A DNA stretch of 64,000 nucleotides from Blastocladiella emersonii ATCC 22665 (GCA_025594325.1 JANHCV010000005.1:1922001-1986000); one strand, 5' to 3'. Positions 29,793 to 64,000 are shown, counted from the first letter of the stretch. Numbers and translations: made by a program. The notes: generated by a model from the sequence alone, not told the origin.

Positions 29793-30449
29793 TCAACGAG
29801 AAGAAGGCGAGGAGGAGAAGACGGCGGCCCGCAGCGACGCAATCGAGAGCAGCGGAACGGGGGCGGGACCGGCGGTCGTTGCTGCGGCTCCCGCTGCGGT
29901 CTGCGGGGACGGGGACGCGCTGCTACACCCACGAGATGCGTGAGAACGCACGTCGTGACGAGGCAAGGTGGGAGCTGCGACGTACCCGACAAAGGCGTCG
30001 ATCGTGGGCGGCCCGAGCGAGGACAGCCTGCCGAGGTACTCGGCGTCGGCCGACGGCGGGTGGCGCGGGCGCAACTGCTGTGGTTCGACGCTGCCACAGA
30101 CGAGCGACGGGTAGACGCGCTCGGCGGCGGGCCGGTCGAGGGCGGGCACCGTGATCCGGGCGGCGAGCGAGCGGCGGACCAGCGGGTCGGCGAGGGCGAC
30201 GTCGCGGTCGCCCTCGAGGACGCTGGCGCGGACCCGCTGCCGCTGTGCTTCCTTCAAGGAGGCAGCCCGCAGCGACGAGTTCCACGCCGGACGGTCCAGG
30301 CCTGGCGGTGCCTGAGGGCGGGACCGAGTTGAGTAGACGAGGACGGACGCCGACAGCGGCGGGCTCGCGGGCTGCGGCGGGCGGTCCCTCGGGCCCGGTG
30401 CCGGGTCGTCGACAAAGGTCGTGTGCGCGCTCACGTCGCGGCTGTGCAT
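29793..30449 (-). CDS. Hypothetical protein (its 5' part lies in the left repeat arm)
   Basis: ORF starting MHSRDVSAHTTFVDD; possible GTACGT intron near 29920-29985; transcribed divergently from the ABCG gene. Confidence 0.45.
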   Translation of the reverse strand: MHSRDVSAHTTFVDDPAPGPRDRPPQPASPPLSASVLVYSTRSRPQAPPGLDRPAWNSSLRAASLKEAQRQRVRASVLEGDRDVALADPLVRRSLAARITVPALDRPAAERVYPSLVCGSVEPQQLRPRHPPSADAEYLGRLSSLGPPTIDAFVGYVAAPTLPRHDVRSHASRGCSSASPSPQTAAGAAATTAGPAPVPLLSIASLRAAVFSSSPSSR

Positions 30450-30600
30450 CTTTCTTGGTTGCGGCAAGAGTTGGTCGAGATGGTGGGGGAGAGGCTGGGT
30501 GGACCGGGATGGTGAGAAGCGGAAACCGCGCCGCGACGCGTCCGCGCTCTCCCAACCCCGCTCGAGTAATAAACCATGAATCTCTCAACTAGATGAAACC

Positions 30601-33501
30601 ATGGCATCGAGCAACGGCACCCGGCCCGCGGGCAGCAACGCCACGACAACCGTCCCGTCCACCATCGCCGACGTGATCCTCGGCGGCGACAACAACCGCG
30701 GCACGAACCTCACGCTCGCCGACCTGCTCGAGATCCGCAACTACACGGACCGCGCCACGGGGCTCAACTGCTCGTGGATCGCGTCGCGCCACGTGTGCCC
30801 CGAGGGCCGCTTCTGCCCGACCGGGTCGGCCGACGCCTCGTACCCGTGCCCGACGGGCTTCTGGTGCCCCTACGACACGGCGCACCCCGTCTACTGCTGC
30901 CCGGGCTTCTACTGCGCGAGCCCGAACCGCATCGCCGTGTGCCCCGAGGGGTCCTACTGCCCGCGCGGCAGCAACCGCCCGTTCCCGTGCCACTTTTTCC
31001 TCGCCCAGTGCAAGCCGGGCACGGCCGTCCCGACGCGCGTCGGCGTCTTTGTCGTGTTCGGGGCTTTTGCCGTGGTCGCGCTGCTTGCTTTCATCCTGCG
31101 CGCCAAGCGCCAGAAGCGCGCGCGGCTGCAGCGGGCGCTCCAGCTCGACTTGACGGCAGCGCCGACCCCCGTCCTCAACTTTTTCCCCTTGTCCACTTCG
31201 TCGGACGCGGCCGAGGACGGCTCTGAACGGGTGTCCGCTGCGCCCAACCTGCGCCAACGGGCCGGCTTTTCGGACGAGTCCACTTCCGCGAGCACCGCCA
31301 TTGAGCTCGACACCCTCGGTGCTGGACCGCGAAAGAACACGGGCCTCCTCGACACGGGCGGCCAGGTCATTGCCGACGTGACGCGCGCCGAGGTCCCCGC
31401 CGTCCACTTCCACGTCCGCTTCGAAGGCATCACCAAGACGCTCAACAACGGCGCCACCATCCTGCGCGACGTGTCGGGCGAGCTGCGCCCCGGCAAGCTC
31501 GCGGGCATACTCGGCGGCTCGGGCTCGGGAAAGTCCAGTTTCCTAAATACGCTGGCCGGCAAGACGCGCCGCACGGGCGGCACCGTGTACCTCAACGACG
31601 TCGAAGACGAGATGGCGCGCTACGCCAAGCTGATCGGGTTTGTCCCGCAAGAGGACATTAGTACGTTTATCTTCGCGCGCCGCGTGCGCTACCAGGCTAA
31701 CGCCCCGCCAACGAATTAGTGCTCCGCGACCTCACGGTGCGCGACATTTTGCGGCACTCGGCCCACATGCGCCTGCCCGCGGCCCTGCCGACGCCCGAAA
31801 AGGACCGCCGCGTCAAGGAGCTCATGGCGTACCTCGGCCTACTCGGCGTCGCCGACTCGATTATTGGCGACGAGCGCGTGCGCGGCATCTCGGGCGGGCA
31901 GCGCAAGCGCGTCAACATTGGCATGGAGCTGGTCGCCGAGCCGTCGATCCTGCTCCTCGACGAGGTCCGTTTGCTTTGCAACTGTGCTCACGAAAGACCA
32001 CTAACCGCCGTCCTTTCCCACAAAATAGCCGACGAGCGGACTCGACTCGAGCACGTCGCTCGAGCTGTGCTCGCTGCTCAAGCGCATCGCCGTCGAAAAG
32101 GGCCTCGTCGTCGCCGCCGTCGTGCACTCGCCGAGCCAGCAGTGCTTTGAGCTGTTCGACGACGTGACGCTGCTCGGCACGGGCGGCCGCGTCGTATACA
32201 CGGGCGCGCGCCGGTACGCGCTCGAGTACCTGCGCAACCTCGGGTTCGTGAAACCGGCCAGCCAGAGCGAGCCCGAGTTTTTTCTGGATGTCGTCACCGG
32301 TAAAGTCCCGCTGGCGTGGAACCCGCAGTTTCGCGCGCACGACCTGTTCGACTACTGGGACGCGTTCCGCCGCGGCGCCGCCATTTCCGACAATCACACG
32401 CCCGGGAACGCGAGCATGCGCAGCGTCGCCGCCGAGATCTCGACCCTCGCCCGGTCACATCCCGCAAACGCGAAGCGGCGGTCGCTGTCCAACCGGCTGC
32501 TCGACAATGTCGCCGACGTGTTCCGCGATTTGGCCGACTACGCGCGCGACGTGGCCGACGAGACGGCGCACACCCTCAAAACGCTGGGCGTGCCCGACCC
32601 GGTGCGCGCCACGCCGGGCCCCGCGCACACGCTGCTGCTGTGCATGCGGCGCGCCGCCGTCCAGATCTGGCGCAGCTGGGGCTCGTTCATGTCCGAGCTC
32701 GGCGTGCACCTCGCCGCGGGCGCCTTCATCTCGCTCGCCTCGCAGGACAACGAGTACCTCGGGCGGTACCCGGACGCGCTGTGCGACGTGACGCCGTTCC
32801 CGATGCAGCCGGCGTGCCGCACACCCCTCAACCTGCTGCCGCAGACGGGCGTGTTCGTGTCGCTCGGCGTGCTGTTTGCGGGCATTTCCGTCGGAGCGAG
32901 CACGTTTGGCGGCGCCGAGCGCGTCGTGTACTGGCGCGACGTGGCGGCCGGGATGCCGACGGTGCCCTATTTCGTGGCCAAGGCCCTCGTCGACGTGCCG
33001 CGCATCGTGCTCGCCGGCGTCACCTTCTCGCTGTCCCTGGTATTCCTGTGGCCGTACCGCGGGCTGTGGGTGTCCATCTGCGCCGTCGTGGTCGCCCTGT
33101 ATTTCGCGGCGTTCAGCATGGGCTACTTCATCTCGACGGCGGTGCACGCGCCGCAGGCCGTCGGGCTCGTGGCGACGGCGTTTGCGCTGCTGTGGGCGCT
33201 GGTGCTCGGCGGGCTGGTCCCACCCCTAGGGGAGGTGGAGCGCGAGGGCAGCGGCTACTACCCGTTCCGGTTCCTGTGGTCGCTGTCGGCGCCGCGGCAC
33301 GCCGTCGAGGCGCTGTTCATCGAGGAGGTGGGGGCGCGCGCGTGGGACGAGCTGACGCAGGGGACCGCCGTGTACGACGCGCTCGGGTACCGCAAGGACG
33401 GGTACGGCGCGGCGGTGCTCAACATCGTGGTGATTGGGCTGCTGTGGCAGACGGCGGCGCTGGTCGGGCTCAAGCTGGCGAATCGCGAGCGTCAAAAGTG
33501 A
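30601..33501 (+). CDS. ABCG (white/WBC-type) half transporter with Cys-rich N-terminal ectodomain, copy 1
   Basis: Walker A GGSGSGKS, signature ISGGQRKR, Walker B LLLDEPTSGLD after splicing; introns 31661-31719 and 31965-32028; C-terminal TM domain. Confidence 0.93.
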
Positions 33502-33517
33502 ATGCATCCGAAAAAAA

Positions 33518-34590
33518 TTACAAAATGTCCTTGAGGTTGACCTGCGCCGACCCGCGCGCCAGCGGCTTGGGCTGCGTCGGCGACGGCTTCCACCCGATCA
33601 GGTAGATGACCTGGAACGTGGCGGGCACCGAGTTGCCGTCGGGGTTGCCGTGCATGGCCTGGTAGATGGCCGCCGCCGCCGCGAGCGTGTCCCGTTTCAG
33701 GGCGGGCCGCCGCTGCGCCACGGCGTTCGACTCGCCCATGGCGCGCAGGTCGTCGACCAGCTCGTACGCCGACGGGTAGTCGACGACAACCTCGTCCACG
33801 TCGACGGTCGTCAGCGTGAACCCGGCGCGCGACAGCAGGCCGCCCATGTCGGCCGAGACGGCCATGGGGCTGACGCGCGGCGACACACCGCCCTCGCGCT
33901 CGAGCTCGGCCAGCTGCAGGCTCGTGCGCAGCTCGAACACCGAGTCGCCGCCGAGCATGGCGCCGATGAAGACGCCGTCGGGCTTGAGGCACCGGTGCGC
34001 CTGGATCAGCACGCCCGGCAGGTCGTTGACCCAGTGCATGGACAAGTTCGACACGACCATGTCGAGGCTGTCGGGCGCAAACGCGCCGCCGAGCTGCGTC
34101 TCCTCGTCGAGCACGCGCCGCTCGATCTCGACGTCGCGCTCCCCGTCCAGATCGGCGTCGCGGTACAGCAGGTCGCGCGACATGTCGCACATGACGACCT
34201 TGGACGTGATGTCGGCGTCGAGGTGCTTCACGACGTGCCCCGCGCCGGACCCGACGTCGACGATGACCGGGTACCGGTTCTTGACGTCCTGTTGTATCTC
34301 GCGGGTGTTAGTCTCTGTGAGTGCAAGTCGCTTCCCGAGAAACACGGACGGACCAGGATGCGGTCGACCAGCCGGGCGGCAATCTCGTCCTTGAGGTAGT
34401 CGGCGGCGCGGGCGCTCGGGTGCCGGCTCGCGCGGTCGCGCTGCAGCCGCTTGGCGGCGCGGTCAAACACCTGCGGCGCGCCCGCCGTCGGGGCCGCAGC
34501 GACGCCCGCCCCCGTGGTCGCCAGCGCGCGCGATGCCGTGAGCCGTGACGGTGGTGCGAGTGCGGCAAGTGCGCGGCAGCCGTGATACAT
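33518..34590 (-). CDS. NDUFAF5: NADH dehydrogenase assembly factor NDUFAF5-like SAM-dependent protein, copy 1
   Basis: Mitochondrial-like presequence; VFDRAAKRLQRDRA, VDVGSGAG, SNLSMHWVNDLPG, ELRTSLQLAELEREGGVSPRVSP, VPATFQVIYLIGWKP; intron 34289-34353. Confidence 0.9.
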
Positions 34591-35146
34591 GGTTTACGAG
34601 GTATGTTGGTCTCGGAGTGACATCGTCGCAATATGCAGTGGTTGAGCACCGCGTTCGCGCAAATCACGTTGGGCTCAGCCGTGTGGCGCGGCGCGTCATC
34701 TGCTGGAACCTCATAGTCGGCATCAAGTTGCCTGATACGAGCTGATACGGACTGGAGATCTAGGACCGACTTCCATGCGCAGGGACGCTGAGGCGCGGAC
34801 CTGGGCAGAAGGCGGACTGAACCCACCCTGGCCGTGCTATCGTGTTGGCTGAGAGCGAATCAACGGCTCTTCCACCTACCGACCGTGTCGTACACTGAGC
34901 ACTCGGCCGTCTCCGCCCGAAGCATAGGGCGCCAGACAAAGACTTCGAGAGACAGTGTCCCCCGCGGCATGTGATGCGGCGTGCCGGCGCGGGAGACATC
35001 GGAGAGACGCGTTCTTAGAAGATTCCCATCGGCCGGACGCGTCGCCGCGCGGACGGCGACGATTCCGTCTCCTCACCTCGGCTCCGTCCTCGACTCCGTG
35101 TGGCCGCGACGACGGGCCCCTTGCGCCACTTGCAGCGACTCTCTAT

Positions 35147-37212
35147 ATGCATCAACACGCGCCTGACGCCTCCGCGGCGCCCGCCCCGCCGCCCGCGGCG
35201 CCCGCCCCGCCGCCCGCGGCGCCCGCCCCGCCGCCCGCGGCGCCCGCCCCGCCGCCCGCGGCGCCCGCCCCGCCGCCCGCGGCGCCCGCCCCGCCGCCCG
35301 CGGCGCCCACGCCGCCGACGGTCGACGCCGCGGCCAGCGCCGCGCTGATGGCGTTCATCCAGAACAACGCCATGGAGCCCGCCACGGTCGGCGGCTGGGT
35401 CGCCATGGGCGCGGCGTGCGAGTGGCACGCCGAGGAGACGCGCGACCAGGTCGCCCGGATCGCCCAGAGCATCGCGGCCGAGATCCCGCACGGCCGCCAC
35501 AAGCCGCTCGTCGAGGCGTCGATCCGCGTGTCGGCCATGGCGACCCAGCTCGACCACGCGCACCAGATCGTCACGAGCCGCATCGCCGCGCTCACGTCGA
35601 CGCCCGTGCCCGAAGCAACCGGTCCGCCGATGCCAGCTCCTGCTCAAGTTCCCGCAGGCCGTGGACCACCATCGGCCGCGGCGCCGGCGGCCGTATCCTC
35701 GGCGACTACCTCGGCGCCCGCACCGGCTCGGCCGGCCTCGATCTCGGCGCCCGCGTCGGCATCAAGCGCGCCGCCGTCGTCTGCCGCCTCATCTTCTACC
35801 ACACCCGGCGCACCCGTCCTCGCCGCTGCTGCCCCCGCCCCGCTCGGTTCCGCGCAGGCACGGGACCCGCGGCGCCCACGGCACCAGTTCATGCCGGCTG
35901 TTCCCGTCTTCAACGCGCTCGGGTTCGCGTCCGTGACCGCGGCCGCGCCGTCCCCATCATCTTCGAGCTCGTCGCCGGCGGCGGCAAGTATCCCGCCCAG
36001 CAGCGCCTCGGCCGCCGCTTCCGCCGCCAGCAGCAGCAGTCGCACGCCTACGAGCCGCAGGCCTACGAGCAGTCCGCGAGCGCCGCTCCCGCATCTACGA
36101 CATCGTCGGCGTACGCGACGTCGTCGTCGACTGGTTCTTCCACGTCGGTCCATCCGCGTCACGATGACCACCACCACCACCACCACCACCACCACACGGC
36201 GGCCCATCACCACGACCACCATCACCACGGGCCTACGACGGCCGCCGCCGGCCGCGGGTGCAAGCTGTGCAAGATGATTATCCGGTCCGGGTCTGGGTCA
36301 AAGCGCGTGCGCCTGGACGCGCACGGCACGTCGCAGTGTCCGCTGGTGCGGTCCGAGCAGGAGATCGTCCGGTTTGCCAAGACGTTCGAGCCCGGGCTGC
36401 GCCGCGTCAAGGGCATCCAGAACATCAAGCCGGGAACCGGGCCCGACGTCACCGAGGCGATTCTCGCGCGGCGCGCTCAGCGGCTCGCGGACCAGATCGA
36501 GAAGCTCTGCGACCGGAGCCCCGAGTACCGGCCCATCCAGCTCGCGCTCCGCATGCTCGCCCAACTGCCGACGGCCGACGGTCGCGCGCACCTGCTCGGC
36601 TTCTTCTTCGACACGCTCCGCGAGCTGCAGCAGGCGGCGATGCGCAAGGCCTCGGGCATCGCATCGCACGACAACTCCGTCGCCGTCCAGGCCAACTCTG
36701 CCGCACCGGCGGGTCCGCCGGCGGCCGCCGCGGCCACGGCCTCGTCGAGAGCCTCGTCGTCCGCATCCGTCGCAGCGCCTCATGATTTCGCGCTCGCTTC
36801 CGTACCCGCTCCTCCTGCGGCCAACCGCCCCTTCTTCTCCATGTGCGGCTACTGCCGCGCCGTCCTCCGCGGCGAGCCAGGCCGCATCATGGGCCAAGAG
36901 CACTCGCACCGTGTCGACGAGTGCAAGCTGCTGTCGTACGACCTCGCCAACCGCGTCAAGCGCTGCCTGCATCATCTCGCCGCGGCAGGCCTCCCGTTCG
37001 AGTTCGGCTTCACGTCGCACGCCTCGACTGTGGGCGAGACCGCGCTCGTCCGGTGCGCCGAGCAGCTGATCGCCCAGCTCATCCAGCTCGACAAGTCGTA
37101 CCCCAAGGCGCGGGTCGTGCGTTCCGGTCTCGGCGAGATCCTGCGGTTCGGCAAGACCAGTCGCCGCACGGACGCCCTCATCCTCCTCTTCACGCTGGTG
37201 CTCGAGGACTAA
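35147..37212 (+). CDS. Unknown protein with Pro/Ala repeat, poly-His and two C-x2-C-x17-H-x4-C + helical domain repeats; split over two overlapping frames (copy 1)
   Basis: ATG-35147 frame (stop 36277) overlaps the 35416-37212 frame; knuckles at 36259-36339 and 36844-36924. Confidence 0.6.
35174..35299 (+). repeat. 21-bp VNTR (GCGGCGCCCGCCCCGCCGCCC) x6 encoding AAPAPPP
   Basis: Six perfect units here versus seven in the right arm. Confidence 0.92.
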
Positions 37213-37862
37213 GTGCGCCGAAGCGCGTGGGCCGGCGGCCGACTGGGATGCCGCATCGGCGACATCGTTGACTCTTCCTAATACCATTAGCACATTAATC
37301 ACCACTCACTCCCTCTTCCCAAGAACCTCGCTTGCATATAATTGGTTCTTTCGCATTGTTCGCTTGGCCTCCCTGGGTTGTGGAGCGCGCGTCGCGTGGG
37401 CCGCTGGATCAAGTGACGGCGAATCTTCGCCAAAGTACTACACATTGACCAGATCCGGCCGTCGTGCTCTCACCGAGGGACAAAAGGGAGTGAAGCATGG
37501 ACAGTATTTCTCGGTGACCTTAGCTCATGGCGAAGCCTTGAAATCCGGAGCGAGGGGCACTTTGCCAAAGTCAAGCTCTCGTACTCGGCGGGCGGGAGTC
37601 GAGTGGACACGTTGCATCGGGGCTGTTGGCGTGGATATCGGGGGACCGTTTCGAACCCTAAAAAAGTTCGGCAATGATAGTCCATCATTGAGGTACCTGA
37701 CCGGCTACGTCCATAGACTGGTGCAACAAAAAAATGCCCTCCTCCCCCCACTTACTAACCACTAACCATAAACCTTTTGCTCGATGGCATTTCTGGTCTT
37801 TCCTTCTTGAATTGTTGCTATTTTCACGCGCGCGCGTGCGGTGCCTCGGGAGACAGGCGGTG

Positions 37863-37924
37863 GAGACGCGTCGCGAAAACGCGTGATCCGATCACGCGCC
37901 GTGTGCGAGACGCGTCGCGCCACA
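37863..37924 (+). promoter_or_regulatory. 62-bp conserved dyad element, copy 1 (function unknown)
   Basis: GAGACGCGTCGCGAAAACGCGTGATCCGATCACGCGCCGTGTGCGAGACGCGTCGCGCCACA: two GAGACGCGTCGCG direct repeats flanking the palindrome CGCGTGATC-N-GATCACGCG. Confidence 0.6.
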
Positions 37925-38073
37925 CTTTTGATCAACTCACCTGAATTTCAGATGCTGTTCACGTTTGAAAAGGTGTAAAAAACTTGTCGGGCATTCATAG
38001 AGGATATTTATTGACTCGCGACACAATTTTTAAATACTTGACTCGAGACCTTCCGCCTGCAAGGTCTGGATTA

Positions 38074-38529
38074 ATGAGCCGACGGCCGTGCATTCGCGTT
38101 GTTAGCCAGACGGGAGGTCAGCGAGCGCAATTACACATGCTTTCTAAGGCGGCTACGTCGGCATGCTCAAGAACTGAGTCGTCGATCACGCTCGTAGTGC
38201 GCCAGCCCGAGAACGTAGCCTGGAGTCGTGCGAAGCGACGCAGCGTCTTCGCCGCCCTTCGCCTCGAGGACTTACAGCTATGTCCGTGTCAGCTCGCCGC
38301 TTCGAATCCGCCGGTCGACTTTGACAACGAGATCATGCAGTGTACGACGGGTGCAAGCGCGGTCGTGGTCTGCAGATTCACTCGGAAGCTGTTGCGCGAG
38401 ATCGGCAAGCTCGACCAGTCGTACCCGATGCCGCAGGTGGCGTGTGCCGGTCTCGATGTAGTCTTCCGGATACACAAGGACCAGGACTGCGTGGAAGTTC
38501 GCCTGCTCAAGCTGTTCGCCAAGCTCTAG
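38074..38529 (+). pseudogene. Truncated/degenerate paralog of the helical C-terminal domain of the 35147 gene (151-aa ORF)
   Basis: CPCQLAASNPPVDF...VCRFTRKLLREIGKLDQSYPMPQVACAGLDVVFRIHK aligns with RCLHHLAAAGLPFEF...VRCAEQLIAQLIQLDKSYPKARVVRSGLGEILRFGK. Confidence 0.6.
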
Positions 38530-39208
38530 CGGCGGCGTCACCGTTACGCGCGGTAGTCGGCGCGGCGCGACTGCCGAGGCGTACGACTCGTGCCGCGGTT
38601 GCCAGTTGTGCTCGTTGTTAGCATAACTCTCTACCATCATTCAGCATGAACGTTCCCACATACACTCAATCTTAGCGCACTAGTTCTTGCCATTCGTCCC
38701 GCTGACGTGAACAATCGTCTTGACTGCCCTACGCTGATGCTGTGATGGGTAGACTGGCCGCATGTCGATAGAGCGAAGAGGGACGACGTTTCTGTTGTGT
38801 TGGGTTTTACAGAGTCGGTCACTGCTCGCCTCGGCCGGGGTTGACGATTCGCTGGTGGGAGCTGGGCGCGAAGGGTACATTGCCCTGGTTGGACTGCTAC
38901 GTTTGACGGGTAGGAGTGGAGTCGTCAGACCGCAGCTTCTCGGTTCATGGCCGTGCGTGTGTCCAGGCCCCCGTTCGAGTCCCTTGCTTTCAAGCAAGGG
39001 CTTTGACATTGCTTCCATCATCATCAATGCGTGTGTGGTCTCTCCGCGCACGGACCATCAACCTGAAGACTCAATTTGGCCTCCCTCCTCCCTGTTGAGC
39101 TAACTACACTAACCTTTTATCATCAGAAACTCGGATTTGTTATCCCCTTTTCGGTGTGATATTCTCGGTTTCGCGGGCGAACGAGGCCACCGCGGGAGAC
39201 GATTGGTG

Positions 39209-39270
39209 GAGACGCGTCGCGAAAACGCGTGATCTGATCACGCGCCGTGTGCGAGACGCGTCGCGCCACA
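39209..39270 (+). promoter_or_regulatory. 62-bp conserved dyad element, copy 2 (inside the spacer)
   Basis: 61/62 identical to copy 1; the only change is the central base of the dyad (C to T at 39235). Confidence 0.6.
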
Positions 39271-39572
39271 GTTCAATCAACTCGCCTGAATGCGGATGCC
39301 GCACGCGCTCAAAACGTTTCAGTGCCGTATGTATCAACCAGGTAGTGTATATACTGACTTGCGAGCCCATGGCTAAGCCCGGACTTGAGGTTTTCCCGGC
39401 CACAGAGTGCGTGGTTCAAGTGAACCCTCGCCAAAGCCCTCCTGTTGTCCAATTCGGCCTCGTTGACGCATTCAAGGACCGTGCTGGTGATCACCGTCGG
39501 GGGTAAGCCGGCCCGCGGTCATATAAAGAGGTGCGTGCGATGGTTCATGTATTGCCGTCAACGTGGCGACGA

Positions 39573-41962: not shown

Positions 41963-42179
41963 TGTGACTCTATTGCATGGACTCGCGGTGCATTCGGGGT
42001 CGGCGCGATCTCGGCCTGCAGGGCGTCGGGTCGGCTGCGGTCTCACAACGACATGATCGCCACGTCGTCGGCGCGCGCGCTCGGGCGACGCCGAGGCCAA
42101 GACATGATGTAGTCAGTGTATATCTAAAGTATATGGTTGGTCGGTTTCACACGGAGAAGCCGAGCGGGACGGGAAGCGC

Positions 42180-50995: not shown

Positions 50996-51199
50996 GCGGG
51001 CGCGGGTCGGTTGGTACCTCGGCGCCGCGCCGTGCCGTGGGACTTGCTTTTCTGGGAGTGAGTTTCTATGTATGTGCTGATGGAGATGTAGATTAGAATA
51101 GAACTCGGTGAACACGGTCAGCGAGTCTCTCAATCGACGTGACAAGGAACCGAGGAAGGCACGCGGGCAGTAGGAATCAAAAATGCATCTATGAGAGTG

Positions 51200-52162: not shown

Positions 52163-52892
52163 TCGGGCGGGCGGGCGGGTGTCGAGCAAAGGCAGCAAGA
52201 AGCAGTCTACGGCAGGCAGTGATACATGGCACGTCGCGCTGGTTGATGTTGACGGAAGAGGAGGGGCCCTGAGTACGAGTCTGTGGTTCGGCGAGCGCCA
52301 CCGCTGCGGCGGATCGGATTACCCCGGCTGACCGCACGTGCGCCATCGCGTCCATCGAGCCCATCCGAAAGGGCCGTATTGCGGGCGCCGCCAAAGTACG
52401 CCACTGCGCCACATCGTTACAGTTAATCTATACGCGCGCCACACCAACAATCTGCTACATCCATCTCGACACGTGCCCGCGATCATGGGATGCTGGGGAG
52501 CTCATGAAACGCAGGCGCACGCCGCCACCAGCGCGCCGGCCAATCGGCGGCCGCGACGTACGCCGCGATCCTATCATCTCGGGTCATGGGGCCCTTGGGC
52601 TATGCCATCAGCAACGGTCCGCCGCCTCGGGAGCTATCGGGCGCGCGATCTCCCCGGGTTCCCGCGCGCTTGAGCGCCTGCTTGCGCGCTGGAAGGGGAA
52701 GTCGCCGTCCGCCGCCTCGCGCGCTTCCCACCCGGCCGCCCGGCCTCGGCCGTTGCGCGGGGGTATAAAGACCGGCTGCCCCCCGCTGCCTGAAGTCCCC
52801 TCGCTCTCCACGCTCCTCAATCGCTCGCATCACACGAGCATCACCGTGATCCTCGTCTCGAAGCCCCTCTCTCCCACTTCTACCCGATCATC

Positions 52893-54435
52893 ATGGGTGC
52901 TGCCGCCGACGCCAAGCCCGCGAGCATCGCACAGCCCGGCACGCTCGGCCGGAGCCTGGGTGTCGTCCAGGGCGCTGCCCTCATCACTGGGTACGCCTCG
53001 CTCGACCGCAACAGCCCTCACGCGGCCCGACTAACCTCGACGTCTCCGATCTAGTGCCATGATCGGCAGTGGTGTCTTCACCAACCCGGGCAAGGTCGTC
53101 GGGATCATGGGCGCCGTCGGGCCCTCGCTCATCCTGTGGGTCCTCGGCGCCGCCATCGCCTACTTTGCGTCCATGAACTACGCCGAGCTCGGCTCGCGCA
53201 TCACCGCCTCGGGCGGCGACGCCCCCTTCCTCGACTACGCCTTCCAGAGCCCGCGCCGCTTCTTCGCCAGCATGTACTCGTGGACGCGTATTTTCCTCAT
53301 CAACCCGGGCTACAACGCCAGTCTCGCCGTCATTGCCGGCTCCTACCTCACCTCGGCCTTCCCGCACGTCTTCCCCGAGGACCCCGAGGTCGCTGGCGGC
53401 GAGTACTACGCCAAGCGCATCGGCGCCGTGATCCTCGTCGTCCAGACCCTCGCGTGCGTGCCCTCCAACAAGGTCGCCGGCAAGTTCATCACCTTCGTCA
53501 CCTCGATCGCCGTCCTGTGCCTGCTCGCCTTCTCCGTGACCGGCCTCTTTGTCCTGTTCGGCGTCGCCCCTAACGTCCGCAACCTCGAGAACTTCTCTGC
53601 CGCCCACCTGTTCCAGGGCACCACCACCAACCCGGGCGACTGGGCCTCGGCCCTCTTCAAGGTCCTGTGGGCCTTTGACGGCTTCGCCAACCTGGCCTCC
53701 TCGCTCAGCGAGCTTAAGGACCCCGAGCGCAACATCCGCCGGTCCACCGTCATGGGTATCAGCACGGTCGGCCTTCTCTACATCCTCGCCAACATCTCGT
53801 ACCTCGTGGTCCTCAGCTACTCGGACATGTCGACGCTCGGGTCCGGTGTCGCGTCGCAGTGGGCCACCAACGTGTTCGGCCCTACCGGTCAGGTCATCGT
53901 GATGCTGCTCATCTTCCTGTGCGTGTGCTCGTGCTGCTTTGTCACGCTCTTCTCGGCCTCGCGTATCGCCCACGCCACGGGCGAGTCTGGTCTCATGTAC
54001 CCGCCGCGCTTCTTCTCAACGGTCAACGCGCGGTTCGGCACGCCCATCAACGCCCTGCTGTTCAACTTCGCCATCTCCATGGTGCTCCTCATGGTCCCGC
54101 AGGGCGACACGTTCTGGTTCATCATCGACCTTGTCTCGTACCCGCTCTGGGTCTTCTACGGCCTGACCGCCTTTGCGCTGCTCACCATCAAGCACCGCGC
54201 CGCCGGCAGCATCTTCGCCCACGACGACAACTTCTCTGGCGTCCAGGTCAACGCCATCGGGCCCGTCCTGATCGTGCTCGTGTCGCTGTTCCTCGTCATC
54301 TTCCCCTTCTTCCAGGAGTCGATGGTGCTGTCCTCGTCGCTCGCGTGGGCGTGCATCGCCGTCGGCGTCGTGCCCTACTTCCTGCTCTCGCGCGGGAGCA
54401 ACAAGGACAAGGCCGCTGGCGCTGGTGTCGTGTAA
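52893..54435 (+). CDS. APC superfamily L-type amino acid permease (LAT/Mup1-like)
   Basis: GAMIGSGVFTNPG, YAELGS...SGGD, WAFDGFANL..ELKDPERN, 12 TM; intron 52991-53054. Confidence 0.92.
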
Positions 54436-54936
54436 ACACGACTGGAGAGGATGGTGACGCGACGAGTATCGTCGTAGACGGAGTCCATGAAGACCAAGAG
54501 GAGGGCGAACCCACTATGTACATTTTATATCCTTCCCTCCTACACTACACTACATCTGATTTAGGATCAAACTTATCGCCTTTCACGCGAAGGAAGTGGG
54601 CCATCCTTGGCCACGTCACAGCTGGACAACCCGTGGTCAGACTTCAAAGGGGCCTTGACACTTGGTCGCTGCTGCGCGGACCAAACGCACACGAGTCACG
54701 ATCGGTTTTCATCTATGAAATCAACTCTGACTTCCTCCGGCTACTACCCAGGAAGCCTGAATCAGTCAAGCAAGGATGCTTCGGCACTGGCAGAAGCGAA
54801 TTGAGCCAAGCGAGCGATAGAACGACGGCTATTGGCGAGCTTTGTCATGAACTCATAAGAACGGCAGTTAAATGAGATGATCTCGCGAGTCAAACTTTGA
54901 AATGATCATGGAATCGCGAATCGGCGAGTCGCCATC

Positions 54937-54998
54937 TGTGGCGCGACGCGTCTCGCACACGGCGCGTGATCGGATCACGCGTTTTCGCGACGCGTCCC
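54937..54998 (-). promoter_or_regulatory. 62-bp conserved dyad element, copy 3 (inside the spacer, mirrors copy 2)
   Basis: Reverse complement is 61/62 identical to copy 1. Confidence 0.6.
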
Positions 54999-55423
54999 CA
55001 GCAACTGTCTCCCGCGGTGACCTGGCATTTTGCACGCGTGTGAAATGTAAAAGATATGACGAGATAAAAGAGCAACTGCACCCGAATAAGCACAACAAAA
55101 AGGTTGCAACCTGGTGAGGGAGGAGTGGGAAGCTGGCACGCTCGATGCGCGTCCAGGAAGCCCCTTGACGGAATTCAACTTCGAAACTTGATCAGGGCTT
55201 CGAAATGGGGTCGTCCTGCGCAAGGCCATCGACTCGGATGCCACACTTGCCACTTCGACTCCCACTCACCGATTGTGGTCGCGCAACCAGAGCAGAGTCA
55301 CTACCGCACTGTGAAAGCTGGCGAGCGAGTGGCCTTTGTCAGTGTTAGCGGCGCTCCCGAATGCTTGCGTGTATCCGGTTGCGGCAGACGATGCTGCTTT
55401 GTATGTCCCACTCGCATGTCAAT

Positions 55424-55930
55424 TCAACGAGATGCGAAACACGACACCAGTTCAGGCCATGCCAGCTCAGACCAACAGTTAGGCAGTGAGCTGTGGCTAA
55501 CGAGCTTGCCCGCGCAGTCCTCGTCCTGATACAGACGAAGGATAGCCTCGAGAACGCCATACGACACCCGCGACATCGGGTACGACTGGTCGAGCTTGCC
55601 GATCTCGCGCAACAGCTTCCGAGTGAATCTGCAGACCACGACCGCGCTTGCACCCGTCGTACACTGCATGATCTCGTTGTCAAAGTCGACCGGCGGATTC
55701 GAAGCGGCGAGCTGACACGGACATAGCTGTAAGTCCTCGAGGCGAAGGGCGGCGAAGACGCTGCGTCGCTTCGCACGACTCCAGGCTACGTTCTCGGGCT
55801 GGCGCACTACGAGCGTGATCGACGACTCAGTTCTTGAGCATGCCGACGTAGCCGCCTTAGAAAGCATGTGTAATTGCGCTCGCTGACCTCCCGTCTGGCT
55901 AACAACGCGAATGCACGGCCGTCGGCTCAT
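55424..55930 (-). pseudogene. Truncated/degenerate paralog of the helical domain; identical to the 38074 ORF for 119 codons, then a different but homologous tail
   Basis: ...LDQSYPM|SRVSYGVLEAILRLYQDEDC versus ...LDQSYPM|PQVACAGLDVVFRIHKDQDC. Confidence 0.6.
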
Positions 55931-56079
55931 TAATCCAGACCTTGCAGGCGGAAGGTCTCGAGTCAAGTATTTAAAAATTGTGTCGCGAGTCAATAAATAT
56001 CCTCTATGAATGCCCGACAAGTTTTTTACACCTTTTCAAACGTGAACAGCATCTGAAATTCAGGTGAGTTGATCAAAAG

Positions 56080-56141
56080 TGTGGCGCGACGCGTCTCGCA
56101 CACGGCGCGTGATCGGATCACGCGTTTTCGCGACGCGTCTC
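56080..56141 (-). promoter_or_regulatory. 62-bp conserved dyad element, copy 4 (in the right arm)
   Basis: Exact reverse complement of copy 1. Confidence 0.6.
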
Positions 56142-56791
56142 CACCGCCTGTCTCCCGAGGCACCGCACGCGCGCGCGTGAAAATAGCAACAATTCAAGAA
56201 GGAAAGACCAGAAATGCCATCGAGCAAAAGGTTTATGGTTAGTGGTTAGTAAGTGGGGGGAGGAGGGCATTTTTTTGTTGCACCAGTCTATGGACGTAGC
56301 CGGTCAGGTACCTCAATGATGGACTATCATTGCCGAACTTTTTTAGGGTTCGAAACGGTCCCCCGATATCCACGCCAACAGCCCCGATGCAACGTGTCCA
56401 CTCGACTCCCGCCCGCCGAGTACGAGAGCTTGACTTTGGCAAAGTGCCCCTCGCTCCGGATTTCAAGGCTTCGCCATGAGCTAAGGTCACCGAGAAATAC
56501 TGTCCATGCTTCACTCCCTTTTGTCCCTCGGTGAGAGCACGACGGCCGGATCTGGTCAATGTGTAGTACTTTGGCGAAGATTCGCCGTCACTTGATCCAG
56601 CGGCCCACGCGACGCGCGCTCCACAACCCAGGGAGGCCAAGCGAACAATGCGAAAGAACCAATTATATGCAAGCGAGGTTCTTGGGAAGAGGGAGTGAGT
56701 GGTGATTAATGTGCTAATGGTATTAGGAAGAGTCAACGATGTCGCCGATGCGGCATCCCAGTCGGCCGCCGGCCCACGCGCTTCGGCGCAC

Positions 56792-58878
56792 TTAGTCCTC
56801 GAGCACCAGCGTGAAGAGGAGGATGAGGGCGTCCGTGCGGCGACTGGTCTTGCCGAACCGCAGGATCTCGCCGAGACCGGAACGCACGACCCGCGCCTTG
56901 GGGTACGACTTGTCGAGCTGGATGAGCTGGGCGATCAGCTGCTCGGCGCACCGGACGAGCGCGGTCTCGCCCACAGTCGAGGCGTGCGACGTGAAGCCGA
57001 ACTCGAACGGGAGGCCTGCCGCGGCGAGATGATGCAGGCAGCGCTTGACGCGGTTGGCGAGGTCGTACGACAGCAGCTTGCACTCGTCGACACGGTGCGA
57101 GTGCTCTTGGCCCATGATGCGGCCTGGCTCGCCGCGGAGGACGGCGCGGCAGTAGCCGCACATGGAGAAGAAGGGGCGGTTGGCCGCAGGAGGAGCGGGT
57201 ACGGAAGCGAGCGCGAAATCATGAGGCGCTGCGACGGATGCGGACGACGAGGCTCTCGACGAGGCCGTGGCCGCGGCGGCCGCCGGCGGACCCGCCGGTG
57301 CGGCAGAGTTGGCCTGGACGGCGACGGAGTTGTCGTGCGATGCGATGCCCGAGGCCTTGCGCATCGCCGCCTGCTGCAGCTCGCGGAGCGTGTCGAAGAA
57401 GAAGCCGAGCAGGTGCGCGCGACCGTCGGCCGTCGGCAGTTGGGCGAGCATGCGGAGCGCGAGCTGGATGGGCCGGTACTCGGGGCTCCGGTCGCAGAGC
57501 TTCTCGATCTGGTCCGCGAGCCGCTGAGCGCGCCGCGCGAGAATCGCCTCGGTGACGTCGGGCCCGGTTCCCGGCTTGATGTTCTGGATGCCCTTGACGC
57601 GGCGCAGCCCGGGCTCGAACGTCTTGGCAAACCGGACGATCTCCTGCTCGGACCGCACCAGCGGACACTGCGACGTGCCGTGCGCGTCCAGGCGCACGCG
57701 CTTTGACCCAGACCCGGACCGGATAATCATCTTGCACAGCTTGCACCCGCGGCCGGCGGCGGCCGTCGTAGGCCCGTGGTGATGGTGGTCGTGGTGATGG
57801 GCCGCCGTGTGGTGGTGGTGGTGGTGGTGGTGGTGGTCATCGTGACGCGGATGGACCGACGTGGAAGAACCAGTCGACGACGACGTCGCGTACGCCGACG
57901 ATGTCGTAGATGCGGGAGCGGCGCTCGCGGACTGCTCGTAGGCCTGCGGCTCGTAGGCGTGCGACTGCTGCTGCTGGCGGCGGAAGCGGCGGCCGAGGCG
58001 CTGCTGGGCGGGATACTTGCCGCCGCCGGCGACGAGCTCGAAGATGATGGGGACGGCGCGGCCGCGGTCACGGACGCGAACCCGAGCGCGTTGAAGACGG
58101 GAACAGCCGGCATGAACTGGTGCCGTGGGCGCCGCGGGTCCCGTGCCTGCGCGGAACCGAGCGGGGCGGGGGCAGCAGCGGCGAGGACGGGTGCGCCGGG
58201 TGTGGTAGAAGATGAGGCGGCAGACGACGGCGGCGCGCTTGATGCCGACGCGGGCGCCGAGATCGAGGCCGGCCGAGCCGGTGCGGGCGCCGAGGTAGTC
58301 GCCGAGGATACGGCCGCCGGCGCCGCGGCCGATGGTGGTCCACGGCCTGCGGGAACTTGAGCAGGAGCTGGCATCGGCGGACCGGTTGCTTCGGGCACGG
58401 GCGTCGACGTGAGCGCGGCGATGCGGCTCGTGACGATCTGGTGCGCGTGGTCGAGCTGGGTCGCCATGGCCGACACGCGGATCGACGCCTCGACGAGCGG
58501 CTTGTGGCGGCCGTGCGGGATCTCGGCCGCGATGCTCTGGGCGATCCGGGCGACCTGGTCGCGCGTCTCCTCGGCGTGCCACTCGCACGCCGCGCCCATG
58601 GCGACCCAGCCGCCGACCGTGGCGGGCTCCATGGCGTTGTTCTGGATGAACGCCATCAGCGCGGCGCTGGCCGCGGCGTCGACCGTCGGCGGCGTGGGCG
58701 CCGCGGGCGGCGGGGCGGGCGCCGCGGGCGGCGGGGCGGGCGCCGCGGGCGGCGGGGCGGGCGCCGCGGGCGGCGGGGCGGGCGCCGCGGGCGGCGGGGC
58801 GGGCGCCGCGGGCGGCGGGGCGGGCGCCGCGGGCGGCGGGGCGGGCGCCGCGGAGGCGTCAGGCGCGTGTTGATGCAT
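56792..58878 (-). CDS. Double C-x2-C-x17-H-x4-C domain protein, copy 2 (same two-frame split)
   Basis: Mirror of 35147-37212; identical translations apart from one extra AAPAPPP unit. Confidence 0.6.
58705..58851 (-). repeat. 21-bp VNTR x7 (AAPAPPP)
   Basis: The 447-aa versus 440-aa ORF pair and the shift of coordinate sums from 94025 to 94004. Confidence 0.92.
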
Positions 58879-59434
58879 ATAGAGAGTCGCTGCAAGTGGC
58901 GCAAGGGGCCCGTCGTCGCGGCCACACGGAGTCGAGGACGGAGCCGAGGTGAGGAGACGGAATCGTCGCCGTCCGCGCGGCGACGCGTCCGGCCGATGGG
59001 AATCTTCTAAGAACGCGTCTCTCCGATGTCTCCCGCGCCGGCACGCCGCATCACATGCCGCGGGGGACACTGTCTCTCGAAGTCTTTGTCTGGCGCCCTA
59101 TGCTTCGGGCGGAGACGGCCGAGTGCTCAGTGTACGACACGGTCGGTAGGTGGAAGAGCCGTTGATTCGCTCTCAGCCAACACGATAGCACGGCCAGGGT
59201 GGGTTCAGTCCGCCTTCTGCCCAGGTCCGCGCCTCAGCGTCCCTGCGCATGGAAGTCGGTCCTAGATCTCCAGTCCGTATCAGCTCGTATCAGGCAACTT
59301 GATGCCGACTATGAGGTTCCAGCAGATGACGCGCCGCGCCACACGGCTGAGCCCAACGTGATTTGCGCGAACGCGGTGCTCAACCACTGCATATTGCGAC
59401 GATGTCACTCCGAGACCAACATACCTCGTAAACC

Positions 59435-60507
59435 ATGTATCACGGCTGCCGCGCACTTGCCGCACTCGCACCACCGTCACGGCTCACGGCATCGCGCGCG
59501 CTGGCGACCACGGGGGCGGGCGTCGCTGCGGCCCCGACGGCGGGCGCGCCGCAGGTGTTTGACCGCGCCGCCAAGCGGCTGCAGCGCGACCGCGCGAGCC
59601 GGCACCCGAGCGCCCGCGCCGCCGACTACCTCAAGGACGAGATTGCCGCCCGGCTGGTCGACCGCATCCTGGTCCGTCCGTGTTTCTCGGGAAGCGACTT
59701 GCACTCACAGAGACTAACACCCGCGAGATACAACAGGACGTCAAGAACCGGTACCCGGTCATCGTCGACGTCGGGTCCGGCGCGGGGCACGTCGTGAAGC
59801 ACCTCGACGCCGACATCACGTCCAAGGTCGTCATGTGCGACATGTCGCGCGACCTGCTGTACCGCGACGCCGATCTGGACGGGGAGCGCGACGTCGAGAT
59901 CGAGCGGCGCGTGCTCGACGAGGAGACGCAGCTCGGCGGCGCGTTTGCGCCCGACAGCCTCGACATGGTCGTGTCGAACTTGTCCATGCACTGGGTCAAC
60001 GACCTGCCGGGCGTGCTGATCCAGGCGCACCGGTGCCTCAAGCCCGACGGCGTCTTCATCGGCGCCATGCTCGGCGGCGACTCGGTGTTCGAGCTGCGCA
60101 CGAGCCTGCAGCTGGCCGAGCTCGAGCGCGAGGGCGGTGTGTCGCCGCGCGTCAGCCCCATGGCCGTCTCGGCCGACATGGGCGGCCTGCTGTCGCGCGC
60201 CGGGTTCACGCTGACGACCGTCGACGTGGACGAGGTTGTCGTCGACTACCCGTCGGCGTACGAGCTGGTCGACGACCTGCGCGCCATGGGCGAGTCGAAC
60301 GCCGTGGCGCAGCGGCGGCCCGCCCTGAAACGGGACACGCTCGCGGCGGCGGCGGCCATCTACCAGGCCATGCACGGCAACCCCGACGGCAACTCGGTGC
60401 CCGCCACGTTCCAGGTCATCTACCTGATCGGGTGGAAGCCGTCGCCGACGCAGCCCAAGCCGCTGGCGCGCGGGTCGGCGCAGGTCAACCTCAAGGACAT
60501 TTTGTAA
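59435..60507 (+). CDS. NDUFAF5: NDUFAF5-like protein, copy 2
   Basis: Identical translation to copy 1; intron 59672-59736. Confidence 0.9.
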
Positions 60508-60523
60508 TTTTTTTCGGATGCAT

Positions 60524-63424
60524 TCACTTTTGACGCTCGCGGTTCGCCAGCTTGAGCCCGACCAGCGCCGCCGTCTGCCACAGCAGCCCAATCACCACGA
60601 TGTTGAGCACCGCCGCGCCGTACCCGTCCTTGCGGTACCCGAGCGCGTCGTACACGGCGGTCCCCTGCGTCAGCTCGTCCCACGCGCGCGCCCCCGCCTC
60701 CTCGATGAACAGCGCCTCGACGGCGTACCGCGGCGCCGACAGCGACCACAGGAACCGGAACGGGTAGTAGCCGCTGCCCTCGCGCTCCACCTCCCCTAGG
60801 GGTGGGACCAGCCCGCCGAGCACCAGCGCCCACAGCAGCGCAAACGCCGTCGCCACGAGCCCGACGGCCTGCGGCGCGTGCACCGCCGTCGAGATGAAGT
60901 AGCCCATGCTGAACGCCGCGAAATACAGGGCGACCACGACGGCGCAGATGGACACCCACAGCCCGCGGTACGGCCACAGGAATACCAGGGACAGCGAGAA
61001 GGTGACGCCGGCGAGCACGATGCGCGGCACGTCGACGAGGGCCTTGGCCACGAAATAGGGCACCGTCGGCATCCCGGCCGCCACGTCGCGCCAGTACACG
61101 ACGCGCTCGGCGCCGCCAAACGTGCTCGCTCCGACGGAAATGCCCGCAAACAGCACGCCGAGCGACACGAACACGCCCGTCTGCGGCAGCAGGTTGAGGG
61201 GTGTGCGGCACGCCGGCTGCATCGGGAACGGCGTCACGTCGCACAGCGCGTCCGGGTACCGCCCGAGGTACTCGTTGTCCTGCGAGGCGAGCGAGATGAA
61301 GGCGCCCGCGGCGAGGTGCACGCCGAGCTCGGACATGAACGAGCCCCAGCTGCGCCAGATCTGGACGGCGGCGCGCCGCATGCACAGCAGCAGCGTGTGC
61401 GCGGGGCCCGGCGTGGCGCGCACCGGGTCGGGCACGCCCAGCGTTTTGAGGGTGTGCGCCGTCTCGTCGGCCACGTCGCGCGCGTAGTCGGCCAAATCGC
61501 GGAACACGTCGGCGACATTGTCGAGCAGCCGGTTGGACAGCGACCGCCGCTTCGCGTTTGCGGGATGTGACCGGGCGAGGGTCGAGATCTCGGCGGCGAC
61601 GCTGCGCATGCTCGCGTTCCCGGGCGTGTGATTGTCGGAAATGGCGGCGCCGCGGCGGAACGCGTCCCAGTAGTCGAACAGGTCGTGCGCGCGAAACTGC
61701 GGGTTCCACGCCAGCGGGACTTTACCGGTGACGACATCCAGAAAAAACTCGGGCTCGCTCTGGCTGGCCGGTTTCACGAACCCGAGGTTGCGCAGGTACT
61801 CGAGCGCGTACCGGCGCGCGCCCGTGTATACGACGCGGCCGCCCGTGCCGAGCAGCGTCACGTCGTCGAACAGCTCAAAGCACTGCTGGCTCGGCGAGTG
61901 CACGACGGCGGCGACGACGAGGCCCTTTTCGACGGCGATGCGCTTGAGCAGCGAGCACAGCTCGAGCGACGTGCTCGAGTCGAGTCCGCTCGTCGGCTAT
62001 TTTGTGGGAAAGGACGGCGGTTAGTGGTCTTTCGTGAGCACAGTTGCAAAGCAAACGGACCTCGTCGAGGAGCAGGATCGACGGCTCGGCGACCAGCTCC
62101 ATGCCAATGTTGACGCGCTTGCGCTGCCCGCCCGAGATGCCGCGCACGCGCTCGTCGCCAATAATCGAGTCGGCGACGCCGAGTAGGCCGAGGTACGCCA
62201 TGAGCTCCTTGACGCGGCGGTCCTTTTCGGGCGTCGGCAGGGCCGCGGGCAGGCGCATGTGGGCCGAGTGCCGCAAAATGTCGCGCACCGTGAGGTCGCG
62301 GAGCACTAATTCGTTGGCGGGGCGTTAGCCTGGTAGCGCACGCGGCGCGCGAAGATAAACGTACTAATGTCCTCTTGCGGGACAAACCCGATCAGCTTGG
62401 CGTAGCGCGCCATCTCGTCTTCGACGTCGTTGAGGTACACGGTGCCGCCCGTGCGGCGCGTCTTGCCGGCCAGCGTATTTAGGAAACTGGACTTTCCCGA
62501 GCCCGAGCCGCCGAGTATGCCCGCGAGCTTGCCGGGGCGCAGCTCGCCCGACACGTCGCGCAGGATGGTGGCGCCGTTGTTGAGCGTCTTGGTGATGCCT
62601 TCGAAGCGGACGTGGAAGTGGACGGCGGGGACCTCGGCGCGCGTCACGTCGGCAATGACCTGGCCGCCCGTGTCGAGGAGGCCCGTGTTCTTTCGCGGTC
62701 CAGCACCGAGGGTGTCGAGCTCAATGGCGGTGCTCGCGGAAGTGGACTCGTCCGAAAAGCCGGCCCGTTGGCGCAGGTTGGGCGCAGCGGACACCCGTTC
62801 AGAGCCGTCCTCGGCCGCGTCCGACGAAGTGGACAAGGGGAAAAAGTTGAGGACGGGGGTCGGCGCTGCCGTCAAGTCGAGCTGGAGCGCCCGCTGCAGC
62901 CGCGCGCGCTTCTGGCGCTTGGCGCGCAGGATGAAAGCAAGCAGCGCGACCACGGCAAAAGCCCCGAACACGACAAAGACGCCGACGCGCGTCGGGACGG
63001 CCGTGCCCGGCTTGCACTGGGCGAGGAAAAAGTGGCACGGGAACGGGCGGTTGCTGCCGCGCGGGCAGTAGGACCCCTCGGGGCACACGGCGATGCGGTT
63101 CGGGCTCGCGCAGTAGAAGCCCGGGCAGCAGTAGACGGGGTGCGCCGTGTCGTAGGGGCACCAGAAGCCCGTCGGGCACGGGTACGAGGCGTCGGCCGAC
63201 CCGGTCGGGCAGAAGCGGCCCTCGGGGCACACGTGGCGCGACGCGATCCACGAGCAGTTGAGCCCCGTGGCGCGGTCCGTGTAGTTGCGGATCTCGAGCA
63301 GGTCGGCGAGCGTGAGGTTCGTGCCGCGGTTGTTGTCGCCGCCGAGGATCACGTCGGCGATGGTGGACGGGACGGTTGTCGTGGCGTTGCTGCCCGCGGG
63401 CCGGGTGCCGTTGCTCGATGCCAT
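60524..63424 (-). CDS. ABCG half transporter with Cys-rich ectodomain, copy 2
   Basis: Mirror of 30601-33501; differs by H to Y and V to A near the C-terminus. Confidence 0.93.
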
Positions 63425-63575
63425 GGTTTCATCTAGTTGAGAGATTCATGGTTTATTACTCGAGCGGGGTTGGGAGAGCGCGGACGCGTCGCGGCGCGGT
63501 TTCCGCTTCTCACCATCCCGGTCCACCCAGCCTCTCCCCCACCATCTCGACCAACTCTTGCCGCAACCAAGAAAG

Positions 63576-64000
63576 ATGCACAGCCGCGACGTGAGCGCGC
63601 ACACGACCTTTGTCGACGACCCGGCACCGGGCCCGAGGGACCGCCCGCCGCAGCCCGCGAGCCCGCCGCTGTCGGCGTCCGTCCTCGTCTACTCAACTCG
63701 GTCCCGCCCTCAGGCACCGCCAGGCCTGGACCGTCCGGCGTGGAACTCGTCGCTGCGGGCTGCCTCCTTGAAGGAAGCACAGCGGCAGCGGGTCCGCGCC
63801 AGCGTCCTCGAGGGCGACCGCGACGTCGCCCTCGCCGACCCGCTGGTCCGCCGCTCGCTCGCCGCCCGGATCACGGTGCCCGCCCTCGACCGGCCCGCCG
63901 CCGAGCGCGTCTACCCGTCGCTCGTCTGTGGCAGCGTCGAACCACAGCAGTTGCGCCCGCGCCACCCGCCGTCGGCCGACGCCGAGTACCTCGGCAGGCT
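63576..64000 (+). CDS. Hypothetical protein, copy 2 of the 29793-30449 gene (partial, runs off the window)
   Basis: ATG at 63576; reverse complement of 30025-30449. Confidence 0.45.
   Translation, partial: MHSRDVSAHTTFVDDPAPGPRDRPPQPASPPLSASVLVYSTRSRPQAPPGLDRPAWNSSLRAASLKEAQRQRVRASVLEGDRDVALADPLVRRSLAARITVPALDRPAAERVYPSLVCGSVEPQQLRPRHPPSADAEYLGR

Follow-up and report, generated by a model that had tools for sequence, protein, structure and literature searches.

Palindromes of mammalian sex chromosomes have gene-bearing arms tens of kilobases long and more than 99.9% identical, which flank a unique spacer and exchange sequence by arm-to-arm gene conversion, and inversion polymorphisms of the spacer are known among them. 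Inverted gene copies also arise by replication, as in the inverted duplications and triplications of the duplication-triplication/inversion-duplication (DUP-TRP/INV-DUP) type in humans and in origin-dependent inverted-repeat amplification (ODIRA) in yeast. On chromosome XIV of Saccharomyces, 4-kb repeats invert a 24-kb segment over evolutionary time while remaining stable on laboratory timescales; the inversion occurs by homologous recombination, the repeats are homogenized, and no dedicated recombinase is involved (PMC9731477). In Candida albicans, long inverted repeats drive inversion, copy-number change and isochromosome formation (PMC6591007, PMC7371428), and in Ogataea polymorpha the repeats adjoin the two mating-type loci, MATa and MATalpha, one end is under centromeric silencing, and starvation induces the inversion (PMC5720833, PMC6692504). 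Here we describe a locus that invites comparison with all of these systems, namely a 72.8-kb gene-bearing palindrome, most of which lies in a stretch of 64,000 nucleotides from the water mold-like fungus Blastocladiella emersonii ATCC 22665 (GCA_025594325.1, JANHCV010000005.1:1922001-1986000; hereinafter, the window), and which is probably a young inverted segmental duplication.

Architecture of the palindrome

A repeat search and global alignment demonstrate that, within the window, positions 30025-38430 are the reverse complement of positions 55574-64000, and chance is excluded as the source of an 8.4-kb match of such quality. The original prediction, which was made by a model from the DNA sequence, had proposed arms that are reverse-complementary over at least 8.4 kb, and the alignment agrees with this. 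It had also placed the start of the repeat at position 30025; there is no boundary at that position, which merely mirrors the window end at 64000, so that the arm length first reported was a lower bound. The contig JANHCV010000005.1 was therefore walked outward via genes with exact products, and the adjacent contig pieces were then aligned; the sequence read in this manner amounts to 116 kb, minus a 3.2-kb gap at 92072-95275, in the unique stretch that separates the right arm from the third copy described below (positions beyond 64000 are likewise counted from the first letter of the window). The true arms are 27.8 kb long, 3.3 times the initial estimate, share approximately 99.99% identity and are 17 kb apart. 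The right arm ends at position 83399 (record position 2,005,399), which pairs with position 10626. The limits of the six-gene spacer given in the original prediction coincide with ours, and the public annotation calls six genes there. The structural features of the locus are as follows.

10626-38430, left arm, 27,805 bp, delineated by alignment, contig walk and gene calls
38431-55573, unique spacer, 17,143 bp, six annotated genes
55574-64000, in-window portion of the right arm, which runs on to 83399 outside the window (27,826 bp in full) and bears the 11 genes of the left arm in mirror order
1,932,625/6; 1,960,430/1; 1,977,573/4; 2,005,399/400, the four palindrome junctions in record coordinates
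33298, 33329, 33483, plus strand, single-nucleotide polymorphisms (SNPs) between the arms, with mirror positions 60727, 60696 and 60542
35172-35317, plus strand, 21-bp tandem repeat in the gene for a 676-aa protein, 7 units in the left arm
33188-44590, plus strand, source segment of the third partial copy (C3), which is located at 104946 to at least 116348, with a left junction near 2,026,945/6 in record coordinates
38431-38502, plus strand, diverged inverted spacer end, compared with the reverse complement of 55502-55573
37844-37946, plus strand, first copy of an ACGCGT-rich element of 85-100 bp, internally palindromic
39190-39291 (plus strand), 54937-55017 (minus strand) and 56058-56160 (minus strand), other copies of the ACGCGT-rich element

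Each arm contains 11 annotated genes, giving 22 duplicated gene copies, and all four palindrome boundaries are intergenic. Across the outer 22.5 kb the arms do not differ at all. The differences recovered by global alignment are precisely those noticed at the outset, that is, three SNPs and one unit of a variable tandem repeat. The three base differences (left/right) are C/T at 33298, T/C at 33329 and T/C at 33483; they form a cluster that spans 186 bp, located 110-295 bp from the start of the homology with C3, and all fall in the last exon of the gene for an ABCG-type transporter, where two change the protein (His/Tyr and Val/Ala) and one is silent. The 21-bp repeat has 8 units in the right arm (58687-58853) vs 7 in both the left arm and C3. 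An additional small repeat, a 75-bp direct repeat with 93% identity (10916-10990 and 11249-11322, mirrored at 82703-83109), occurs in both arms, 0.3-0.7 kb inward from the outer end.

The original prediction envisaged one pair of arms, and the pair exists; the locus is nevertheless not a simple pair, as C3 lies downstream, beyond the window. C3 is a direct repeat of positions 33188 to at least 44590, displaced by 71,758 bp and located 21.5 kb past the right arm; it consists of approximately 5.2 kb of arm and at least 6.2 kb of adjoining spacer and, with the first 20 nt excluded, is identical to the left copy at 11,382 of 11,383 bp. C3 agrees with the left arm at each of the three SNPs and in the number of units of the 21-bp repeat. 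The segment 33188-38430 is thus found on the plus strand in the left arm, on the minus strand in the right arm and on the plus strand in C3, that is, in three copies of which the middle one is inverted, and accordingly there are three copies of the methyltransferase gene on the contig. C3 includes the BRO1-domain gene of the spacer (the same 1317-aa model) but no exact copy of the Kre9-like gene, which places its right end between the window equivalents of 46202 and 52162. The left end of C3 is sharp and truncates the ABCG gene; this junction is therefore derived, and such a sharp, gene-truncating breakpoint indicates that the region has been duplicating. The final ~310 bp of the ABCG gene (equivalent to 33188-33501) are retained in C3, where the annotation has an opposite-strand gene of 55 aa that is probably spurious.

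The outer and inner junctions differ in their anatomy. At the outer boundaries, identity drops to background immediately (20 of 72 positions identical). At the inner boundary, it falls from 100% to about 65% in one step, and the register is kept for approximately 70 nt: 46 of the 72 bases are identical, where the background is 18.7 +/- 4, and only 0.005% of random 72-nt pairs reach 46. Given that this diverged sequence is in register, the inner junction appears to have arisen within pre-existing inverted sequence, and the outer junction would have formed without homology, as would be expected of break-induced replication or template switching. An unannotated open reading frame (ORF) spans each inner boundary (37984-38529 on the plus strand and 55424-56020 on the minus strand). 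The first 149 codons of the two ORFs are identical, and the tails, of 33 and 50 codons, differ, yet encode similar peptides; their third-position guanine-plus-cytosine (GC) content is 0.64-0.67, compared with about 0.9 in the real genes of this region, and the boundary-crossing ORF may be a decayed gene or non-coding. The ACGCGT-rich element occurs in four copies in 92 kb of contiguous sequence, with two more in C3. All four are located 0.5-0.9 kb from the two inner boundaries, in a mirror arrangement. Each contains three ACGCGT motifs, and these are the sole clusters of at least three such motifs within 120 bp in the 92 kb scanned. ACGCGT is the MluI cell-cycle-box motif of other fungi, and the element could act as a promoter, a replication origin or a recombination hotspot.

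Origin of the palindrome and alternative explanations

Taken together, the abruptness of the outer edges and the single step at the inner one favor a recent event more than a long-eroding palindrome, and we consider it probable that the locus is a young inverted segmental duplication, which created a gene-bearing palindrome in the nuclear genome of B. emersonii. Under this scenario, a DNA end that had broken or stalled at one edge of the spacer would have invaded the diverged (homeologous) inverted sequence at the other end; 27.8 kb would then have been copied outward by break-induced replication or template switching, and the chromosome would have been rejoined at a junction without homology. 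C3 could have arisen separately or by one more template switch during that event. B. britannica and Catenaria anguillulae each have the methyltransferase as a single sequence on a single contig, and therefore its multiple copies are specific to the B. emersonii lineage. No useful conservation of gene order around the methyltransferase and the left-flank gene was found in either of these genomes. In C. anguillulae (MCFL01000003.1), a BRO1-domain gene of 795 aa adjoins the orthologous methyltransferase on the opposite strand; it is weakly similar to the spacer BRO1 gene, at best a very distant relative, and the adjacency may preserve part of an ancestral arrangement in which the arm end and the spacer were linked.

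Several considerations weigh against a young duplication. Its mechanism of formation is deduced from junction anatomy only, and the locus comes from one assembly, in which the threading from flank through arm, spacer and arm to flank may depend on very few or no spanning reads. Furthermore, all differences between the arms fall within the 5.2 kb common to C3, and the probability that three random SNPs would all be located there is (5.24/27.8)^3 = 0.007. Such confinement suggests either that the three copies have exchanged sequence or that a single patch event took place, so that the simple account of a young copy needs an added conversion event. Moreover, an older palindrome in which gene conversion is still going on would be just as likely to show no divergence across 22.5 kb. 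Conceivably, then, the palindrome is old, its arms being kept identical by frequent arm-to-arm conversion, like those of sex-chromosome palindromes, and its spacer inverting repeatedly on an evolutionary or even a culture timescale: this would fit the near-zero divergence of the arms and the alleles common to the left arm and C3, which suggest conversion among copies; the diverged inverted sequence and the mirror-placed elements inside the spacer ends could be an eroded former arm; and the flip/flop repeat of yeast chromosome XIV provides a precedent (PMC9731477). An old palindrome is nonetheless quite unlikely, given that the outer boundaries are devoid of any eroded similarity and the step at the inner boundary shows no gradient; nor is there a related genome with conserved gene order that would date the structure. 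The caution, voiced in the original prediction, that misassembly might be involved is upheld and even sharpened by the finding that the arms are 2.6 times the mean length of the HiFi reads. The assembly was generated with the La Jolla Assembler from PacBio HiFi reads with a mean length of 10.5 kb and roughly 190x coverage, after which purge_dups was applied, overlapping contigs were removed with the aid of minimap2 and the result was polished by Pilon with 65-bp reads (GCA_025594325.1). The perfectly identical 22.5 kb exceed nearly all reads and cannot be spanned by typical ones; hence few or no spanning reads may support the direction in which the spacer is drawn between the flanks or, strictly speaking, the placement of both arms on a single chromosome. 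The arms could accordingly come from different chromosomes, haplotypes or a nuclear subpopulation, or one arm could have been over-duplicated, in which case the palindrome as depicted would not exist on any one chromosome; the raw assembly of 247 contigs was reduced to 21, so that redundant or haplotype contigs existed, and no independent assembly of B. emersonii turned up in contig look-ups. Such mis-threading is unlikely, albeit the alternative to which we give the most weight. The contig contains four junctions, private SNPs and the repeat-unit difference, and the private variants of each arm are at most 5.3 kb from its own spacer junction, a distance linked within a single HiFi read, which implies that the two spacer junctions are distinct molecules or places. 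Fold-back artefacts typically have a tiny spacer, if any, and occur at contig ends, whereas here a 17-kb unique spacer with genes is present and the structure is located approximately 170-290 kb from the end of JANHCV010000005.1 (record 1.93-2.04 Mb of 2,209,773 bp). A chimera of two haplotypes would need the block to the left of the spacer in one and inverted to the right of it in the other, which seems less parsimonious than the palindrome itself, and an assembler would not create the diverged yet in-register sequence found at the inner junction, which is a signature of biological origin.

With respect to the mobility of the spacer, passive inversion by homologous recombination between the arms is plausible on the basis of the sequence. 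The claim that recombination would invert the spacer is thus well founded as regards the substrate, in view of the length, identity and spacing of the arms, but not as regards a switch, for which no machinery was found: in the called genes and tested ORFs of the arms, spacer and flanks, there is no recombinase, transposase, endonuclease or mating-type domain, with the exception of a homeodomain gene outside the left arm. The 116 kb read contain neither a telomere repeat nor an AT-rich island (the lowest GC content of a 1-kb segment is 54%), although centromeres of B. emersonii are undefined, so that the absence of one is unprovable. A programmed flip/flop switch, in which regulated inversion would alter expression by life stage, draws on the geometry of long inverted repeats around a gene block and on the homeodomain gene 405 bp outside the left arm. 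That gene, however, is outside the repeat and would be unmoved by inversion; the spacer genes are ordinary (BRO1, RRM, kinase, Kre9-like and permease); and no local regulatory change would follow from inversion because these genes keep the same 27.8-kb neighborhood on both sides. Neither centromere-like or telomeric sequence nor a recombinase is found nearby, and the silencing centromere at one end of the O. polymorpha segment (PMC5720833) has no counterpart detected here. A programmed switch is thus the least probable of all these explanations, and the likeness to mating-type switching drawn in the original prediction does not survive the finding that there is no mating-type gene in the invertible part and that spacer and arm genes alike are ordinary. 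It also appears highly unlikely that the spacer flips measurably in growing cultures with its orientation tied to life stage or stress while the three copies exchange sequence by gene conversion; if true, this would be a recombination-based switch outside budding yeasts. Two other candidates were rejected, namely transposon terminal repeats, as the tested ORFs and called genes contain no transposase, integrase or recombinase Pfam domain, and a centromere with inverted-repeat structure, as ordinary annotated genes fill the core, which has no AT-rich island.

Gene content of the arms, spacer and flanks

The annotated genes of the left arm, the spacer and the left flank are listed below in this order.

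11954-13966, minus strand, left arm, 595-aa protein
16500-17526, minus strand, left arm, 318-aa protein
17740-19779, plus strand, left arm, ThrE-domain protein, 659 aa
19936-21605, plus strand, left arm, prenylcysteine-lyase-like protein, 518 aa
21664-24621, minus strand, left arm, 985-aa protein without assigned function
25125-26249, minus strand, left arm, ZIP transporter, 374 aa
26499-29619, minus strand, left arm, cytochrome P450, 827 aa
29793-30449, minus strand, left arm, 197-aa protein
30601-33501, plus strand, left arm, ABCG-type transporter, 925 aa
33518-34590, minus strand, left arm, NDUFAF5-like methyltransferase, 335 aa
35147-37212, plus strand, left arm, 676-aa protein without assigned function
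39573-41962, minus strand, spacer, 675-aa protein without assigned function
42180-46202, minus strand, spacer, BRO1-domain protein, 1317 aa, single intron of 69 nt at 45269-45337
46482-48149, minus strand, spacer, RRM protein, 496 aa
48530-50995, plus strand, spacer, protein kinase, 742 aa
51200-52162, minus strand, spacer, Kre9/KNH-like protein, 320 aa, no introns, one exact copy
52893-54435, plus strand, spacer, amino-acid permease, 492 aa
935-6981, minus strand, left flank, Uds1-domain protein, 1992 aa
7845-10220, plus strand, left flank, homeodomain protein, 791 aa, single-copy, intronless, outside the repeat

The right flank encodes AAA_28, a 664-aa protein, IFT52, a lipase, ARPC2, an ISWI-type SNF2 ATPase, an ataxin-10-like protein and an M20 peptidase. 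The domains identified on long ORFs are eukaryotic or fungal, including the ABC-2 transporter, homeodomain and Uds1 domains, and several ORFs are split by introns. The GC content of the window is 64-76%, and that of third codon positions in coding frames is near 0.9. A bacterial origin, suggested by an overall GC of 68%, is ruled out by the introns and eukaryotic domains, and an organelle or viral inverted repeat is ruled out by the nuclear, intron-bearing, housekeeping character of the genes. In the arm methyltransferase, 93% of the query can be aligned with protein H9P43_005314 of B. emersonii ATCC 22665, and this part is 100% identical.

Models for all 11 genes are present in both arms and are equal in length for nine of these. 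The two discrepancies, namely the 985-aa model at 21664-24621, which has a mirror copy of 1036 aa although the DNA is 100% identical, and the 676-aa model at 35147-37212, which has a counterpart of 689 aa at 56792-59051 with one 7-codon repeat unit as the DNA difference, are annotation inconsistencies, not biology. The homeodomain gene ends 405 bp short of the start of the left arm, and its annotated start is the second ATG; the homeodomain itself, of the classical type (PF00046), occupies approximately residues 254-309 of the protein, the best relatives of which, in a library of representatives at 50% identity, are distant homeodomain proteins with about 35% identity or less over the matched stretches. 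Opposite the Uds1-domain gene, there are long antisense ORFs on the plus strand (1005-4100 and 4131-5918) with third-position GC above 0.9, which shows how easily false ORFs arise in a GC-rich genome.

Implications and comparison with known systems

The structure described here would entail a double dosage of eleven genes and a triple dosage of the methyltransferase and the 676-aa gene, with 11-13 genes in all doubled or tripled, and the locus would be a substrate for arm-to-arm gene conversion and passive inversion of the spacer. If real, it is a very large, clean, gene-bearing palindrome that would allow arm-to-arm gene conversion, spontaneous inversion and duplication by replication to be studied in a natural setting; the host is an early-diverging zoosporic fungus that propagates asexually, has no known sexual cycle and is being established as a model. 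The genome was reported to be nearly free of duplicated genes (3 of 255 BUSCO genes, 1.2%; genome paper), and the palindrome is not mentioned in that paper. For users of the assembly, these findings carry a caution: 17-73 kb of contig 5 may be oriented otherwise than shown, and 11-13 genes may differ in copy number from the assembly, which matters for dosage, expression and gene-editing work.

The resemblance to the palindromes of mammalian sex chromosomes consists in long, near-identical, gene-bearing arms around a unique spacer. Those palindromes, however, have been shown to be old across species, and many of them hold testis-expressed gene families, whereas the sharp outer edges of the present structure favor a recent origin. 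The replicative rearrangements of the DUP-TRP/INV-DUP and ODIRA types offer a different parallel: there are three copies of the 5.2-kb segment at the inner end of the arm, the middle one of which is inverted, and one junction lies in pre-existing inverted homeologous sequence while another lacks homology. Unlike in those rearrangements, the copies here are not contiguous, being separated by 17.1 kb and by approximately 44 kb, of which 22.5 kb belong to the right arm and 21.5 kb are unique; at least one further step is therefore needed. Junctions at short inverted repeats with adjoining copies are not observed here; only the inner junction is located in inverted homeologous sequence.

Among the yeast systems, O. 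polymorpha and Komagataella phaffii have inverted repeats that flank a segment of similar size, 19 kb in O. polymorpha (PMC5720833, PMC6692504); MAT loci at the repeats, centromeric silencing and induction by starvation, which characterize the O. polymorpha switch, were not found at this locus. C. albicans, like B. emersonii an asexually propagated fungus, has multi-gene repeats of very high identity that are tens of kilobases apart (PMC6591007, PMC7371428). In the multi-gene example considered here, the copies are ~3.2 kb long, and the rearrangements, which are only predicted here, have been shown experimentally (PMC6591007, PMC7371428). The repeats of the S. cerevisiae chromosome XIV region are 4 kb rather than 27.8 kb long and consist of a sporulation gene family, as opposed to the 11 unrelated housekeeping-type genes of the present arms, and both orientations have been seen across strains and species, as compared with the one assembly considered here (PMC9731477). 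In that region as in this one, nevertheless, ordinary genes, 15 in the yeast and six in B. emersonii, are enclosed by near-identical, gene-containing inverted repeats (PMC9731477).

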